A stretch of 64,000 nucleotides of DNA from Bispira polyomma (lineage: Eukaryota), in the NCBI GenBank assembly GCA_965649765.1, contig OZ287751.1, positions 38,130,001 to 38,194,000 of the forward strand, given 5' to 3'. The notes below the pieces were generated by a model. The model ran no database searches. It had not been told where the DNA came from and was given only the letters and a program-made list of their open reading frames with translations. Shown in pieces: positions 12,521-28,407 of this stretch. Positions within the stretch are counted from its first letter, which is position 1. Each line of letters opens with the position of its first letter. The position numbers were made by a program, and so were the translations under genes.

Positions 12521-13653
12521 CTAGAGATGCAACGCCTGTGCAAGTAGTTCTACTTTTAAGAAGTCTTTCACTTGGAGTGTGCCTTGCTGAGCACTCATTT
12601 CCGCGAGGACGTTGGGATCGTATGCAAAGTGTACTAGAGCAGCGGGGGCCAAACCCAGGGCCGCCAGAGAGAGGCTGTCATCTTTTAACTGACTTCCTCC
12701 TTGGACGGCCAGCGAAAACGGAACCCAGTCTAATGTCAAATTCTCCCGCACATAGTCTGCCACGGCGCTCAGCTTCTCGCTGGCTTTAAACGTTCCCTGC
12801 AGGATCACTCCATCTGGAAAACGCACCCTCACGAGACAATAGCGGTACCTTCGGAGTTCTTTCTGCCGTTCTCTTTCCCGCATTTCCTTTGTTCTGAGCA
12901 TTCCAAACCTCTCGACGGCTTCAGTTTTAGCCTGCTGTTCTTTCATCATCTCCTCAGGGCTGATGTTGTAGAACTCTCTAGGCACCTCCATGCGGTTTGC
13001 AATATTTCCTTTGCCAGAGATATACACGGTTTTATTCTTGTCCAGGGTGGGCCGTATGGCTTCAGCCGTCACCAAGATCTCCTTCATAGAGGCGAGATGT
13101 GCGGCATCCAACGCCATTTCGGGATCCATGACTAGGAACACCTCTGGAGTGTTGTTAGGTCCCGGCAGAGTCTGGTGTACGAACCCTGCAGCCTGCAAGA
13201 AAGCCTCAGTCCCTTCCAATGAGGACACACGCTCTTGGAATGCTTTGTTGTTCACCCGGATTTTACGAAATTTCTCCTGGCTGGGATAGGCTGCAATGTT
13301 GTCTAGATATTTACACAATGTCTCCACACAAAGACGGACTTTCTCGCTGTCTTTATTAAAGGTGTAAATCATCAACGCAGATGTCATCTGTGGTTCTTCT
13401 GCTAGTTGGGAATAGAGAAAGCTTTGTATACACTCCTCCATCTCATTCTTGGGCAGCACATCATCTGTGACCAATGGACAGGAGAAATATACCCCAGACA
13501 CAGCCAGCAGGGGGCAGCCCTCTAACTCTACTTCTTTGGGAGCAGAATAGACCTCAGCTAGTCTGTAAGCTTCCTCCTGTTGCTTACGTTCTGACTCCAG
13601 TTCCTGCTTTACCTTGGCTTTGATGCTAGCAGCACTCGTGCCAAAGGATGGAC
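12521..13653 (-). CDS. UBXN6: UBX domain protein 6 (UBXD1), terminal exon with PUB and UBX domains
   Basis: Acceptor tttttag at 13654-13655. PUB domain CVETLCKYLDNIAAYPSQEKFRKIRVNNKAFQERV...FLQAAGF; UBX domain RYRYCLVRVRFPDGVILQGTF...LGLAPAAL, lacking the FPR motif as in UBXN6. Stop TAG at 12523-12521. Confidence 0.95.
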
Positions 13654-14237: not shown

Positions 14238-14486
14238 TGAATTGAATTGGGATATTTAACATCCACACTTGTACCTGTTTAGGTTATATTGGGACGGGTA
14301 GTTGGAAACGCTGGAGAAAACACTGGATTGATCAAGGTTCTGCACTGAAACCAGCGGCCCACAGTAAGGAACTACCTCCTTTTTCACATAGACATCGACG
14401 GAAGTCGAACCCACGCCAGCCGATCCCAGAGGTGCGAGACCAGTAATTGTGAAAGGTAATGCTAACCATTAGGCCCCGGAGGCCCC
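14238..14486 (-). mobile_element. tRNA-derived SINE, family A
   Basis: A-box/B-box on the - strand; similar to 21258-21508 and 31232-31482; flanking repeat TTCTTCATATAT. Confidence 0.8.
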
Positions 14487-14909: not shown

Positions 14910-15031
14910 CTGCCTTAGGACCTCCTGCACGAGCTAATGCGGCCTGAGCAGCAGTGTTTGCAGCCTGGGAGCTGGTCTGTCGATGGACTACAGGGGCTTG
15001 GTGAACTGGCTTTGAACTCGATGTCGGAGGT
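14910..15031 (-). CDS. UBXN6: UBXN6 coding exon 2 (VIM-like motif)
   Basis: ttgaag|A CCT CCG...AAG GCA G|gtgggt = PPTSSSKPVHQAPVVHRQTSSQAANTAAQAALARAGGPKA (cf. human AAAAALARL). Phases 2/1 fit the neighbouring exons. Confidence 0.9.
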
Positions 15032-15762: not shown

Positions 15763-15860
15763 CTTTGTTTGGTGTCTTCGGTTAGCTTATGACCATCACC
15801 AGCAACCTTAAACTTGAGCTCCAGCTTCTTCTTCTCAAAGAACCTTTTAATGGCTGCCAT
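15763..15860 (-). CDS. UBXN6: UBXN6 coding exon 1
   Basis: MAAIKRFFEKKKLELKFKVAGDGHKLTEDTKQ(R) matches the UBXN6 N-terminus (KKFFQEFKADIKFKSAGPGQKL). Donor AG|gtatat at 15762; exon acceptor at 15935-15936. Confidence 0.92.
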
Positions 15861-15878
15861 ATTGACCTAGCTCTTTGG

Positions 15879-15934
15879 TTACTCACTGTGAGGGTGTGAA
15901 GAACTATCTTCTGATGACTGTCTACTGAGAGATC
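15879..15934 (-). CDS. Putative upstream ORF, exon 2 (in the 5' part of the UBXN6 ATG exon)
   Basis: tacag|GA TCT CTC AGT...AGT GAG TAA = (G)SLSRQSSEDSSSHPHSE*, in phase with the donor at 20471. Confidence 0.55.
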
Positions 15935-16955
15935 CTGTATATAACACACGCATGGTCATTCTTTGGTGCAGATACAACATTTAACAATCAACATCCTAAT
16001 GTCAGAAGTAATCTGTTATTACTTATTTTTTATAGGAAATGCGTAGAAGGAAAAAAAAGACAGATAATTGAGTCTAGAAGTTGGACCTGAATAGAAGAAC
16101 AATGAATGGATTGTACAACACATGGTACATTACAGCCAACAAAATCTCACATATTCAATACTTCTCAATAATATATTTGCCATGTTTTACACTTTAATGC
16201 CTAATTTAAGAGGGTTGAGATCAAGTGCTTTTAAAAGGATTTAAATGGAAATCCTTTTAAATTGTTTAAATCCTTTCAGTTTCAAAAGTTTTAAATCCAA
16301 TTTTTTTTGTACATTTTACTTGTACATCTACTGAACTATATGCATACAATGTGAGGGTGTCTCAATAGGTTTGAGGAAGCTTGCACTTGAGAGAATTGCA
16401 CTTAATAGAGTATGTCGAGTTATACAAGTTCTATAGAGATACTTTGGGTAATTGTAGTCTTTTGAACTCATAGATTAAAGGCAGTACACAGTTACAGGGT
16501 TGAGAAAAACCCAGGTTTTACAAGTATTACCCAGACCTGTGGAGAAAACCTGGTTTACCGGTTTTTACTGTGCAATATGTATGCAATATGTATGTTAATG
16601 AACTTAAAGACTTAACAAAAACAAAAAAAATTGAAACCCCATTATCTCCACATGGCTTGTCATTTCCTTTGAATAAAGTTAATAAAAAGATATTATAATA
16701 TGTCGATAAAATAATATATTTATCTCTGTCGGTATTGTTCATGCTTAAAGTGTCGGAAAAATAATAAATTTAATTGAGATTCGTAAATTTACCGACCACC
16801 GGCATAACTTGAGAGTTAAAATGCTGAGGTAGTCGGGATAATAGACACATCAACTTCAATATAACAAAAATTATAGCTGGTTTATTAAGCAAATCAAATT
16901 TTAATTTAAATTTCATTAAATTCATTTAAATTGCGATTTTCTGTGTATTAAATTC

Positions 16956-17164
16956 AATCAATATTTCTTGCTTGATTTTAACCAATAATGAATCATTTTT
17001 AAGGAACTGAAATCTGCCATAGTTACAACTGATGGATTGAACAGTGTATTAAGTGTATTATTGATTCTGTGTATTAAGTTCAATCCATCAGTTGTAACTA
17101 TGGCAGAGTTCAGTTCATTTAAAATGATTCATTATTGGTTAAAATCAAGCAAGAAATATTGATT
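16956..17164. repeat. Fold-back inverted repeat (~87-bp arms, 35-nt spacer)
   Basis: 16956-17042 is the near-perfect reverse complement of 17078-17164. Confidence 0.9.
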
Positions 17165-17339
17165 TTATTAGAATAAATCTTTTCACACATTCAATCTTTG
17201 GGTGTGAAAACAGCCACGCCAAACAACTGTAAAAATAAAACTTCTCATCATAAACATTTATTAAAGAAAAATGATACTTTGAACGCTATCTGACCCTATA
17301 TATACCCCTTTTAAACCCTAAAAGTTATGTAATTTTGAG

Positions 17340-20299
17340 TAACTAATTGAGTACAATGCCAGCAATTGACAAGCTTTGAGGAGACTAGGGGTTTTTTTTA
17401 GTTAGAAATATATTTTATCATGCTCATACTACAACAGGAAAGAGACAAGGCTCAGGCTCAACAGGAATCGAACCCAAGACCACCACCGGCCCCTTGGGCC
17501 CCCCAGGGAATGTCCGACTGCCAAGAATGTCACCTCTGCACTGGGTCAAGCCTTGGATCGAGCGAAGAGAGGCCCTGGGATACTACACCAACTTAATGCC
17601 AGAGTTTGAGCAAGGGGATGGACCTGGATACAGAAACTTCTTTTGGTTGCCTCCAGATCTATTCGAGAAAATAAAACAGAGGATCACACCCCATGTCAAG
17701 AGAGCCACAACCTGGTACAGAAAGCCCTTGGATGTTGGACTTAAACTGGCAGTCACCTTGAGGCACCTGGCCACTGGGGAGAGCTACAGTTCCCTGTCCT
17801 ACCAATTCTGGGTGGGCAAATCAACCATTACCAAGTTCATTCCAAAGATTTGTAAGGCCATTATCAAAGAATACGAGGGAGAAAATCTGGCCTGCCCAAC
17901 CACCCTCATTGACTGGCTGAAACTGGAAGAAGTCTACAGAAATCAATGGAACATCCCTCATGCTGTTGGCTCTGTTTACATAAAGCATGCAGCCATCAAG
18001 AAACCTCCCAAGGCTGGGAGTGAATTTTTCAACTATAAAGGCTTCTATTAAATTGTGCTGTTAGCCCTGGTTGATGCCGATTACAGATTCATTTGGGTGG
18101 ACATTGGCTGCAGTGGGTCCTGTTGCGACGCCCAAATTTTCAACCACTCAGAGCTGAAGGAAAAGTTGGAACACGGATCCATCGGGCTGCCCAGACCAGC
18201 ACCACTGTTTGAAGGGATGTGAACTACTTTCTGCCAGGGGCAACGCCTTCGCCCTGAAAGCAAAGGATATGTAATTACAGGATATCCAGGGGAAGGAGGG
18301 TCGTCAAGAATGCCTTCGGAATATTAGTCGGCAACATCCTCTGGTGGCCTCAAACCTGACTTTAACCTGTGTGATATTGCATGAAATTTTAAGAAGCCGC
18401 TGTGGTAACCCAGCACTAGAGCACCCAAACCCTCAAGATAATCCGCCTGAGCCTGAGGAGCACCTAGTGGGAGATCAATTGGCCAACGATAGAAATCCAT
18501 CAAGAGGAAGGAATGAGCAAAGGGACGGTTTGATGGACCAATTCATGAATGAGGGGGCAGTCCTGTGGCAAAATGACAGAATAAGTTTGACCTGAGCCTA
18601 ACCACCTGAGACTGATAAGAAGCTGCCCTGAGATGTCGCAGTAGCTGCAAACAAAAAAAGTCCTTTTCAGGACCAGCCAAATATTTTAAGAACAATTACT
18701 AAGCTGTTTGTTACAACCCTCACCCCCTTACATCTCACAAATCACATATCTTAAGGTTAAACCCAGCACCCATACATGTAATATTTTTGGCCCCACTATA
18801 GAAACATGAAATAATTTTTACCCAAACACACACACTGATAAAAGAAACCCCTTATTATAACAGATTTGAACCCAAGGCCTTACACTGACATTATAAATTC
18901 CTACTGGGGACCCCATAATATATAACCTAAAGATTCCCCAGCAATAGATAGTTCATGGGCCATTCAGTGTCACAGATCAATTTTTCAAACTTTGTCATTT
19001 GTGTGACCACTAAAACCCTAATGGCTACTAAAACCCTAAAAGTGGGGTGACCACTTGTTAGGAAGAGGAATATCTCAGGAATTTGTTTATTTTGTCTGTG
19101 AGAAACTCTTTCTATTGCACAACTGTCAAAATATGGGGTTCCAAAGAGTTGCTCATTACTTTTTTCTTAAATCATTTCTTTTCTCTTATTATTTAAAAAA
19201 AATGAAAAATTGAGGGGACAGTGTAATCTTTTTGTTTGGATTAATATTTTGGATTTCATATTTTGGGATTTGAACTGAGGGCCAATGATACTTTTATTTC
19301 TGTCTGTATGTGTGAATTGTTTTTGAAGGGACGGTGTAATCTGTTTGGGATTTTCAACAAAATAGCTCAACATATTGTTCTTGGAAGATCCGGGTTGCCC
19401 TGGAAAGGGCCGGAGGTTCTGACGTGTGGCGGTCCAATAAGCACCGCCAGGAGATGGCTGACTGGTTACTGCGGTGATTGTGATGGCTATACAAGGGGCA
19501 GGACGTTGGGTTGTTGCTGGTTGAGCGATCCAAGTTGCTGTTAGTTGCTCAGTTGTTGGGCATTCATTGTAATCAGCTGTGGTGTTTCTGTCAGTCCGAG
19601 CTAAAGATCTGGCACTGAGGTATGAAAAAGTGCTGGGGTGTTGGGGCTACTGATCTGTTTATATCCATACTCTTGGGGTATTCCTGGGTTATACCTTCTC
19701 AGAAATAATGAAATTACAAGCCAGCAACCTCCAAATATAGTGAGTCCCGCACTGCGGGGATGTTTTTATACCCAAATGCCCCAGTTCGATCCTATTGGTC
19801 AGAAGTGAATACGTCAGATCCTACGGGTTGTAAGTTCGATTGTATACACACCCTGTTCGATTGTTTAACTCGCAGATCCGATAGCCAAAACGTTCGGGCC
19901 AGTTCGATCGCAGTAAAAAAACTTACCAACTGCAGGTTCTGATTGGGTGAGAGTAAGTTTGATCGGTACGCAAAACGTCAGATTGGGATACGAGTAAGTT
20001 CGATCTGACTACTGGCCTGTTCTGTCTGATCAAAAATGGGCGAATTCGAGTAAGATAGGACAGACCAGTGTTAGGAGTGTCTGGAGTGCGATAAGACTTA
20101 TCGGACAAAACGTATTGAAAATAAAATCGAACATATATCCATCAATACGATTTAGAGGTCTGGGGAGGTAAGTCGGGGTACTTTAAGAAAATATCAAATA
20201 TGTTTGATATCCTTGCCGACCTTCCTCCCAAACATATACGTCACGCCCCAGACCTCGAAATTGGCAAGGTCGAGGATCAAATCGGCATAGTGGAACTGG
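17340..20299 (+). mobile_element. Harbinger DNA transposon remnant (approximate extent)
   Basis: Transposase remnant, then CpG-rich subterminal sequence (19740-20299) ending ...GGCATAGTGGAACTGG|TAA. A matching left terminus was not found. Confidence 0.5.
17420..18595 (+). pseudogene. Degenerate PIF/Harbinger (HARBI1-like) DDE transposase
   Basis: KLAVTLRHLATGESYSSLSYQF, WNIPHAVGSVYIKH (normally GAIDGKH), FFNYKGFY*, ADYRFIWVDIG, RRVVKNAFGIL (catalytic E replaced by K). Contains stops and frameshifts. Confidence 0.9.
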
Positions 20300-20471
20300 T
20301 AATTCAGTGGAACCACCATTTTTGATTAAAAGTATGTTTATTTTGTCCATGACGAAAATATCTACACGACGAAAATATCTAGCGAGGTAGTTGCTGCAAA
20401 CCTTTTCATGCCGAAAAGGAACAGGGTAGCAAATCTAGCAATACAATATAGTAACTCAGTAATGAGGATAC

Positions 20472-20721
20472 CTTTCATAAATCTTTTAGTTAAAGTTTCA
20501 CCATAGATACTCCAAGCAATTTTGATAAGAACAATATTAAAAACAAGACAAATAAACAGAATAAGAATCAATTTATCCTCAACACAAGTTTTTTGCCAAA
20601 AAGTATCTGAGTCTGAATCAACACGGTCTTCTCGCAACGGTACTGAGAAGTTATCAGTTTCTTCTACAGGTTGGGCTGGTTGAAAAAGTTCTTCCTCAAG
20701 AGTAACAACTTCTTTGTCCAT
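20472..20721 (-). CDS. Putative single-pass membrane microprotein (uORF/first cistron of the UBXN6 transcript), exon 1
   Basis: ggaATGG start context; acidic N-terminus; hydrophobic LILILFICLVFNIVLIKIAWSIY followed by basic TKRFMK; donor AAG|gtatcc at 20471. No family recognised. Confidence 0.6.
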
Positions 20722-21169
20722 TCCAACTTATGATGCCACAACGATCATCACATCCAGTCATGTAATTGTTCCTGTCACTTGACTATGAAGATACACACAG
20801 GAAGTTGTCGGTCTACCCATCTTCAGAAAACAAAATACAATATTATAAACCCGACTAATTAAGAAATATAATAGATAATCAAAATAAAATGTCATGTGGG
20901 TAATATTTGGAACTTGCATGTAGGGTAGGTATTTTTTAATGAGAAAGAAATATTTCTATGCTCACAATAAATCTTTTAAAATAAATCTGTGTCTGATGTT
21001 CATTGGGATTTTTGGCCTACTTAAAGAAATATGTTGATCGTAAAATGCATACAACGTAAATGTGGTACGCCGAAAACCCTATAGCGCCGAAAACATGATG
21101 CACGACCATACTTAATAATGTAAATATAATAATAGTATTCAATAGGTCAGATTGTTACAGAAGCCTGTA

Positions 21170-22110
21170 AGGGTCAATAAAGGAAAAAAATAACAATATA
21201 CTTTAGTCATGATAACGACATACTGAGTTGTTATTATGACATATGCTATGTCGTTATTTGAATTTGGATTATTTAACGTCCACTCTAGTACCTTTTAGTA
21301 GGTTATATTGGGATGGGTAGTTGGAAACGCTGGAGGAAACACTGCATACAGTCGATCAAGGTTCTGCAGAGAAACCAGCGGCCCACAGTAAGGAACTACC
21401 ACCTTTCCCACATAGGCATCGGCAGGATTCGAACTCACTCCGCCCAGAGGTGAGAGACCAGTGATTGTGAAGCGCAATGCTTGCTAACCACTAGGCCACC
21501 GCGGCTCCTGCTATGTCATTATAACAACATACGCTATGTCAAAATAATTACTTAGTATGTCGTTATAATGACCTACACTTAATTAGCTAACCCACAAGTT
21601 CTTGTTTTAACAAATTTCTTTCTCCTCTTTATATATATTTTCACAAAAAGACCTATATCTAATATTTTATGATTAATCTTTCACTCAGTCTATTCAGAAT
21701 AACTGCATTTATATTTCTTTAAAAACAAGAACCAACTATTGCATGGAGAAAACATATTGTTTAAAATTTTTCTGGGTTTTTTTAAGCCAAGAATAATGTC
21801 AATTTTAATAGGACAACCTTTAGAAAATGTTATTAAAAAGGGATTACAATACAGATGTAACATATATATAAACACGCTTTTAGCGATTATACAATACAAG
21901 GTTTTTTTAAGATGAAGACAGAAATGCTGTGGAGCCGAAATAATCATTATTGCCAAAAGTTTTCCTGTAAATTAATTTGCATATTTGTTCTAAATATTTC
22001 CAAAAATCATTTTTATATTGAAATTACACTTAGATTATACTAACATTATTACGACATACTCTATGCAATATAACGACACAGATATATTTTTTTTCCCCTT
22101 AATTGACCCT
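21170..22110. mobile_element. Non-autonomous DNA transposon with a nested SINE
   Basis: TA|AGGGTCAATAAAGGAAAAAAA ... TTTTTTCCCCTTAATTGACCCT|TA; internal ATAACGACATA-like repeats. Confidence 0.6.
21258..21508 (-). mobile_element. tRNA-derived SINE, family A
   Basis: TGGCCTAGTGG A-box and GAGTTCGAATCC B-box on -; 14-bp TSD TGCTATGTC(G/A)TTAT. Confidence 0.85.
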
Positions 22111-28333: not shown

Positions 28334-28407
28334 ATGAATGGGACACTAATTCCACATACACCAATTGCAGTAGACTTCTGGAAGGTTCGAAAATGCCCTT
28401 CAGCCAA
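28334..28407 (+). CDS. DCLRE1B: 5' exonuclease Apollo/SNM1B, coding exon 1
   Basis: [24 protein letters not shown](K), cf. human [16 protein letters not shown]. Donor gtgagt at 28408; upstream acceptor ttttcag at 28236. Confidence 0.95.

Follow-up and report, generated by a model that had tools for sequence, protein, structure and literature searches.

The closest described counterpart of the locus analysed here is a dicistronic gene pair of flies. In CG5469/Gint3 (Armless, the fly UBXN6), Hayden and Bosco (2008) found a conserved upstream open reading frame (uORF) of 121 amino acids, traced to Aedes, whose peptide carries WSIYG directly behind a hydrophobic stretch (PMC2276209). In FlyBase this uORF is CG42306, and all CG42306/Gint3 transcripts are dicistronic, with the two open reading frames (ORFs) 5 nucleotides (nt) apart (PMC4528330). 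Published accounts of this dicistron do not reach beyond Diptera and assign the peptide to no named family. Here, we analyse a 64,000-nt stretch of the Bispira polyomma genome (assembly GCA_965649765.1, contig OZ287751.1, positions 38,130,001 to 38,194,000; hereafter the window), in which a gene of the TCTA family and UBXN6 almost certainly lie on a shared mRNA.

The window resembles CG42306–Gint3 in its downstream gene, in the order of the ORFs, in its short spacer and in a homologous upstream peptide, with a transmembrane (TM) segment, a WSIYG-type motif, then x-x-(I/L)T-x-x-F, and a uORF Ka/Ks of about 0.1. However, CG42306 has 121 amino acids and an arthropod-type LPKEH tail, whereas the window peptide has 101, an acidic N-terminus and a Ser-rich tail, and the spacer measures 18 nt against 5 nt in the fly. 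The peptide is also similar to vertebrate TCTA (T-cell leukemia translocation-altered, PF15128, 103 amino acids in human), a small single-pass protein with a TM and W-x-x-Y-G core, although only this core aligns and vertebrate TCTA is a stand-alone gene at 3p21, whose function in human has been described as not clarified (PMC4439957). MOCS2A/B, STREMI–SLC35A4 and Sloth1/2 likewise yield two conserved proteins per processed mRNA, with unrelated sequences. The products of MOCS2 and Sloth1/2 cooperate, whereas the TCTA–UBXN6 pair is known here from sequence only; STREMI is restricted to vertebrates, whereas the TCTA–UBXN6 pair goes further back and has come apart in vertebrates.

The uORF starts at ATG 20721 on the minus strand, in the context ggaATGG as read from the sequence. 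Its first exon is followed, directly after 20472, by the donor AAG/gtatcc, the acceptor AG lies at 15936-15935, and phase 1 matches on the donor and acceptor sides. Past the junction Gly-Ser, 16 more full codons lead to TAA at 15881-15879, giving 101 codons in total, and this last exon also holds the UBXN6 start. The exon and ORF coordinates, the donor, the frame-keeping join, the 101 amino acids, the 18-nt spacer and its TAG, all put forward in the initial annotation, can be read in the sequence. Public DNA runs (n=3) match both exons without differences and at single-copy depth, so the stops are not assembly errors. A retrocopy of the spliced form was looked for in the genome and none was found. 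The downstream ORF is the genome's single UBXN6 orthologue, with PUB and UBX domains; in all 10 contexts compared, the UBXN6 AUG is preceded by A or G at -3.

UBXN6 similarity and trees place the window most likely among annelids. In L005, a related genome, the two-exon layout of the window recurs with an identical donor, acceptor and order. Between both genomes, exon 1 shows 69% protein identity and a ratio of nonsynonymous to synonymous substitutions (dN/dS) of 0.088 (Fisher P=4e-13), which is approximate given that synonymous sites are near saturation. The purifying signal is also found in the N-terminal 37 codons and is gone in shifted frames; in the same comparison the dN/dS of UBXN6 is 0.038. 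A dN/dS comparison was among the checks that the initial annotation had suggested, and the leaders of relatives do keep the ORF. Since it is under such selection, and since exon 1 is the best PF15128 match across the 1.035-Gb genome, the uORF is no chance ORF; judged by these substitution patterns, it is a real two-exon gene under purifying selection.

The initial annotation had regarded the peptide as an unnamed microprotein, but it is a member of a family that already has a name, TCTA (PF15128), represented in the fly by CG42306. With a profile of 19 homologues, exon 1 is the sole match in the genome, and uORFs at the same position in two annelid-like contigs score above the PF15128 cut-off (L017, 40.5 bits; L030, 31.7 bits), the closest Atlas clusters to that of L017 being chordate TCTA proteins. 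The spliced model was queried one exon at a time; a single-sequence word search gave no matches, and a first Atlas search stayed below recognition. The C-terminal tail of CG42306 has its like in three arthropod contigs (L014, L033 and L037); the L014 uORF matches a hidden Markov model (HMM) built from annelids (E=5e-10), and L037 also matches the family profiles. The likeness of the window peptide to CG42306 was assessed by eye on the published sequence and by HMM through L014 and L037. Judged by the PF15128 matches, this likeness to the conserved fly uORF and the fly-type tails, the window peptide is a CG42306/TCTA orthologue and a relative of vertebrate TCTA. Spiralian tails (L017, L020, L030, L031, L006) frequently end in (H/Q/N/K)-R-(D/E)-stop, an ending similar to that of human TCTA; the window ends in H-S-E (15879-15890) and L005 in H-G-E, arthropods having LPKEH-type ends instead.

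The TCTA identity with its protostome-wide range, the lineage splits and the sequence signature of the translation route are new here. In the searchable literature, mostly without subscription journals, neither that identity nor protostome-wide conservation was found, and the pairing was found only for flies and mosquitoes, although a link between CG42306 and TCTA may already exist in orthology databases.

The window peptide fits the TCTA layout, with about 100 amino acids and one TM helix, then W-x-x-Y-G, and W70 and Y73 are invariant across 19 sequences. The acidic N-terminus and single TM helix proposed initially are borne out by a hydrophobic stretch that spans residues 51-69 (Kyte-Doolittle 2.99), with a net charge of -10 on its N-terminal side and of +3 in the rest of exon 1. 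In the AlphaFold model a disordered N-terminus and a short helix precede a long helix at residues 47-82, with pLDDT (predicted local distance difference test) above 90 at 51-70. The copepod-like TCTA (L037:97-657) has 186 amino acids and an extra N-terminal hydrophobic segment, and is missed by Pfam. This extra segment and the charge asymmetry weakly suggest a lumenal or outside N-terminus and a cytosolic tail; an extracellular domain of TCTA has been mentioned, its end unspecified (PMC4439957).

The window, the annelid-like genomes L005, L007 and L020 and Lingula anatina (L016) all have an upstream TCTA exon whose phase-1 intron is identically placed, with predicted spacers of 18, 20, 34, 16 and 9 nt, respectively. 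The Lingula exon (L016:8641-8901), 1.1 kb upstream of UBXN6, is absent from the called genes of its record. Intronless contigs in which a continuous uORF precedes UBXN6 come from nine species (bivalves, annelid-like, bryozoan-like, arthropods, copepod-like and one unplaced animal). Their spacers are 10 nt (L008) and 6 nt (L009-L012) in bivalve-like contigs, 76 nt (L017) and 108 nt (L030) in annelid-like ones, 9 nt in the bryozoan-like L031, 48 nt in the arthropods L014/L015, a TAATG overlap in the arthropod L033, 133 nt in the copepod-like L037 and 64 nt in the unplaced L034. Overall, spacers span -1 to 133 nt with all three frames represented, and the uORF is present on 9/10 UBXN6 transcript contigs examined, one per species. 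The dicistronic arrangement proposed in the initial annotation is thus shared by relatives, and its mention of a conserved-peptide uORF in fly CG5469 agrees with the 121 amino acids listed in PMC2276209. The great age in protostomes that it had conjectured agrees with the annelid-like, mollusc, brachiopod and arthropod pairs. As read from these sequences, the pairing is retained in at least five phyla and in both main protostome branches.

In other lineages the two genes appear apart. No uORF was found in the 10 kb upstream of UBXN6 in the hemichordate Glandiceps, in the 2 kb upstream in a bird (L036, GC-rich promoter-like DNA), or in the 345-nt leader of a clitellate-like UBXN6 transcript (L035). 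Eleven short genomic contigs, which we take to be from gutless oligochaetes judging by the sample series, have none in the 0.5-3.4 kb upstream of UBXN6, where a more distant exon is possible. L006 carries TCTA by itself, on a transcript that has a 3' untranslated region of its own, and in the clitellate-like set (L006, L018-L029, L035) TCTA and UBXN6 are apparently on separate transcripts. The UBXN6 start exon of this set has an acceptor 60-70 nt before the ATG, and its phase-1 reading often stops after two to four codons; a recent split or an alternative last exon is a possible explanation of this layout. Human UBXN6 lies at 19p13, apart from TCTA. The two genes would be separate in vertebrates and, probably, in clitellates, and the simplest reading of the sequences is that the pair arose in the protostome ancestor or earlier and that certain lineages separated the genes afterwards.

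The unplaced L034 (SRR31406944) groups with arthropods in trees at 54/83 support, while a placement with deuterostomes is not rejected by the approximately unbiased test (p-AU 0.50; with the bird, 0.17); the N-terminus of its UBXN6 has a 10-residue stretch in common with bird UBXN6. If L034 were a chordate, the pair would be older than the protostome-deuterostome split. L030, suspected to be a cnidarian, falls among annelids in the tree, so there is no cnidarian data point.

The explanation that we consider very probable is that one promoter and one spliced mRNA serve two stop-separated ORFs, TCTA and UBXN6; that the latter is translated by a scanning-type route is somewhat likelier than not. 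In this model, a promoter upstream of 20721 would give a spliced mRNA encoding the 101-amino-acid single-pass TCTA-family protein and the 450-amino-acid p97 cofactor UBXN6. Most ribosomes would initiate at the TCTA AUG, and UBXN6 would be made by those scanning past or diverted around it. Having translated no more than a very short out-of-frame ORF, these ribosomes would go back to scanning and start again at the UBXN6 AUG, and a share of reinitiation may also follow the TCTA stop. The uORF would thereby limit UBXN6 output and couple the levels of both proteins.

For this combination of leaky scanning and reinitiation, which is the somewhat better supported route, the out-of-frame AUGs within the uORF are informative. 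Eight transcript uORFs contain 19 of them, slightly fewer than the 24 of synonymous permutations (P=0.05), and only 1/19 opens an ORF longer than 12 codons where 7.8 are expected (P=0.0002). This bias is absent from the coding sequences of UBXN6 (P=0.95). The window uORF has a single out-of-frame AUG, at the same position in L005, and L037 also has only one, with none in its 133-nt spacer; the stand-alone L006, one case, has a 33-codon out-of-frame ORF. Since reinitiation is efficient after short ORFs (discussed in PMC2276209), this is the pattern expected where selection favours ribosomes that scan through the uORF. The Tyr-Gly codons were also considered as the site of a conserved mini-uORF, which was rejected, TAT-GG being present in 4/15 only, one of them the stand-alone L006.

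Several points weigh against the proposed arrangement and route. The three public runs of the species are all of DNA type, without an RNA run, and the 20472/15934 junction as well as a transcription start upstream of 20721 are placed from DNA alone. As a query against PF15128, exon 1 scores 22.5 bits (E=9.6e-5), under the gathering cut-off of 27. The taxa of most contigs were taken from trees and similarity, and the intronless contigs are presumed to be transcripts. The short-ORF statistic comprises 8 contigs with start codons picked by us, and its 12-codon threshold was fixed beforehand yet is arbitrary, although the mean ORF length agrees (5.4 vs 10.7 codons expected). Moreover, the TCTA AUG of the window has a good context, with G at -3 and G at +4, which should restrict leaking, and, in the view of FlyBase curators, simple scanning does not account for the majority of fly dicistrons.

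That good context, shared by L005, is better accommodated if the two proteins are made from one mRNA with UBXN6 obtained through reinitiation coupled to termination, once the whole TCTA ORF has been translated, or through an internal ribosome entry site. Spacers of 5 (fly), 6, 9, 9, 10, 16, 18 and 20 nt and the TAATG overlap also suit such a mechanism; however, spacers of 48-133 nt exist too, a calicivirus-type TGGGA is absent from the last 100 nt in 10/10 transcript contigs (genomic loci being uninformative, mostly intron), and the short out-of-frame ORFs would serve no purpose, so that we hold it to be a minority possibility. Somewhat less credible still is a shared locus in which UBXN6 comes mainly from a separate monocistronic isoform, produced from an intronic promoter, from another first exon or by trans-splicing of a spliced leader to the 15935 acceptor. 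In FlyBase, 114/159 dicistronic loci have monocistronic isoforms too, the intron has a strong donor at 19926 within a CpG-rich segment, the L035 UBXN6 leader lacks the uORF, and L006 is a TCTA transcript by itself. Nevertheless, the CpG-rich segment is a multicopy repeat not conserved in L005, the fly transcripts are all dicistronic, and the uORF recurs in nine of the ten UBXN6 transcript contigs. Finally, the window and several relatives have both ORFs in one frame, which would suit a membrane-anchored TCTA–UBXN6 fusion by stop-codon readthrough or frameshift, but this outcome is very improbable: two in-frame stops intervene in the window, the 20-nt spacer of the close relative L005 puts its ORFs in different frames, and across the set spacers fall in every frame, a spread that speaks for two proteins and against a conserved fusion, as the initial annotation had favoured.

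Whether one mRNA with two proteins entails a functional tie is a separate matter. The somewhat likelier view, compatible with the explanation preferred above, is that the linkage is an inherited accident, in which TCTA sits on a housekeeping promoter with no functional tie to UBXN6/p97. The genes are separate in bird, hemichordate and clitellate-like loci, FlyBase labels the CG42306/Gint3 pair as unrelated, no paper tying TCTA to UBXN6 or p97 was found in the searchable literature, and HA-tagged Als alone rescues the als RNA interference (RNAi) wing phenotype, whereas CG42306 does not (PMC4219662). Against this, the pair has been kept in those five or more phyla, and two fly phenotypes concern the tarsus, namely loss of the tarsal region on overexpression of CG42306 and shorter tarsal segments on als depletion (PMC4219662), which hints weakly at a common pathway. 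The roles raised in the initial annotation, a membrane partner or a translational regulator of UBXN6, are conjecture. It is conceivable, though doubtful, that TCTA serves UBXN6–p97 as a membrane partner or regulator of ancient origin, co-translated with UBXN6 since the protostome ancestor (possibly since the bilaterian ancestor, if L034 is a deuterostome), and that a protein-level link persists in vertebrates after gene separation.

The fly and mosquito dicistron is extended here to annelids, molluscs, a brachiopod, a bryozoan-like and a copepod-like animal, and the pairing offers a specific hypothesis for human TCTA, namely action with UBXN6/p97 at membranes. In such invertebrates, RNAi or leader-targeting of UBXN6 affects two proteins, and gene annotation can overlook the upstream TCTA gene, as in Lingula. 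The short out-of-frame ORF signature provides a testable route to translation of a second cistron behind a 100-codon ORF.

Features of the TCTA–UBXN6 locus (positions in the window)
Feature	Position	Strand	Remarks
ETS-like CAGGAAGT, possible promoter element	20798..20805	+	about 80 nt upstream of ATG
Possible upstream AUG, 21-codon ORF overlapping TCTA start	20696..20761	-	matters only if transcription begins upstream of the AUG
TCTA-family uORF coding exon 1	20472..20721	-	250 nt = 83 codons + 1 nt, phase-1 donor; PF15128 E=9.6e-5; dN/dS 0.09
TM helix, residues 51-69	20515..20571	-	then near-invariant W-x-x-Y-G; Kyte-Doolittle 2.99
Out-of-frame AUG, 4-codon mini-ORF	20490..20504	-	sole out-of-frame AUG in window uORF; same position in L005
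Intron	15935..20471	-	4537 nt, phase-1; full of multicopy repeats; position common to L005, L007, L016, L020
TCTA-family uORF last codons and TAA	15879..15934	-	exon also holds UBXN6 start; 62% identity to L005, pN/pS P=0.05
Intercistronic spacer	15861..15878	-	18 nt, with second in-frame stop TAG
UBXN6 first coding segment	15763..15860	-	98 nt; ATG 15860
UBXN6 second coding exon	14910..15031	-	122 nt
UBXN6 last coding exon, PUB and UBX domains	12521..13653	-	1133 nt; whole protein 450 amino acids

Upstream of the uORF, the ETS-like motif reported in the initial annotation is indeed present at the distance given; however, CAGGAAGT sits on the plus strand and the motif reads ACTTCCTG on the transcribed strand. 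As the window contains 6 such 8-mers, it is weak evidence by itself. An ACTTCC core is present at a similar distance in L007, with none in L005. The window and four other loci have a possible upstream AUG with an ORF that extends over the start of TCTA, in differing frames, and such an AUG could divert ribosomes from the TCTA AUG. An acceptor-like pyrimidine tract at 20806-20840 (minus strand), with an AAG end at 20821, makes an upstream non-coding exon a possibility.

The uORF intron consists mostly of high-copy repeats, among them an inverted repeat near 16960-17200, and holds a broken Harbinger/PIF-like transposase remnant (HTH_Tnp_4, DDE_Tnp_4) at 17494-18222 on the plus strand; a single repeat aside, it shows no alignment with L005. 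The non-coding DNA of the window does not align with that of L005 other than in a SINE-like repeat, present in two copies (21295-21500 and 14275-14480) and also found in L005 at 71-77% identity. The next gene lies head-to-head, with its start at 28334, about 7.6 kb off.

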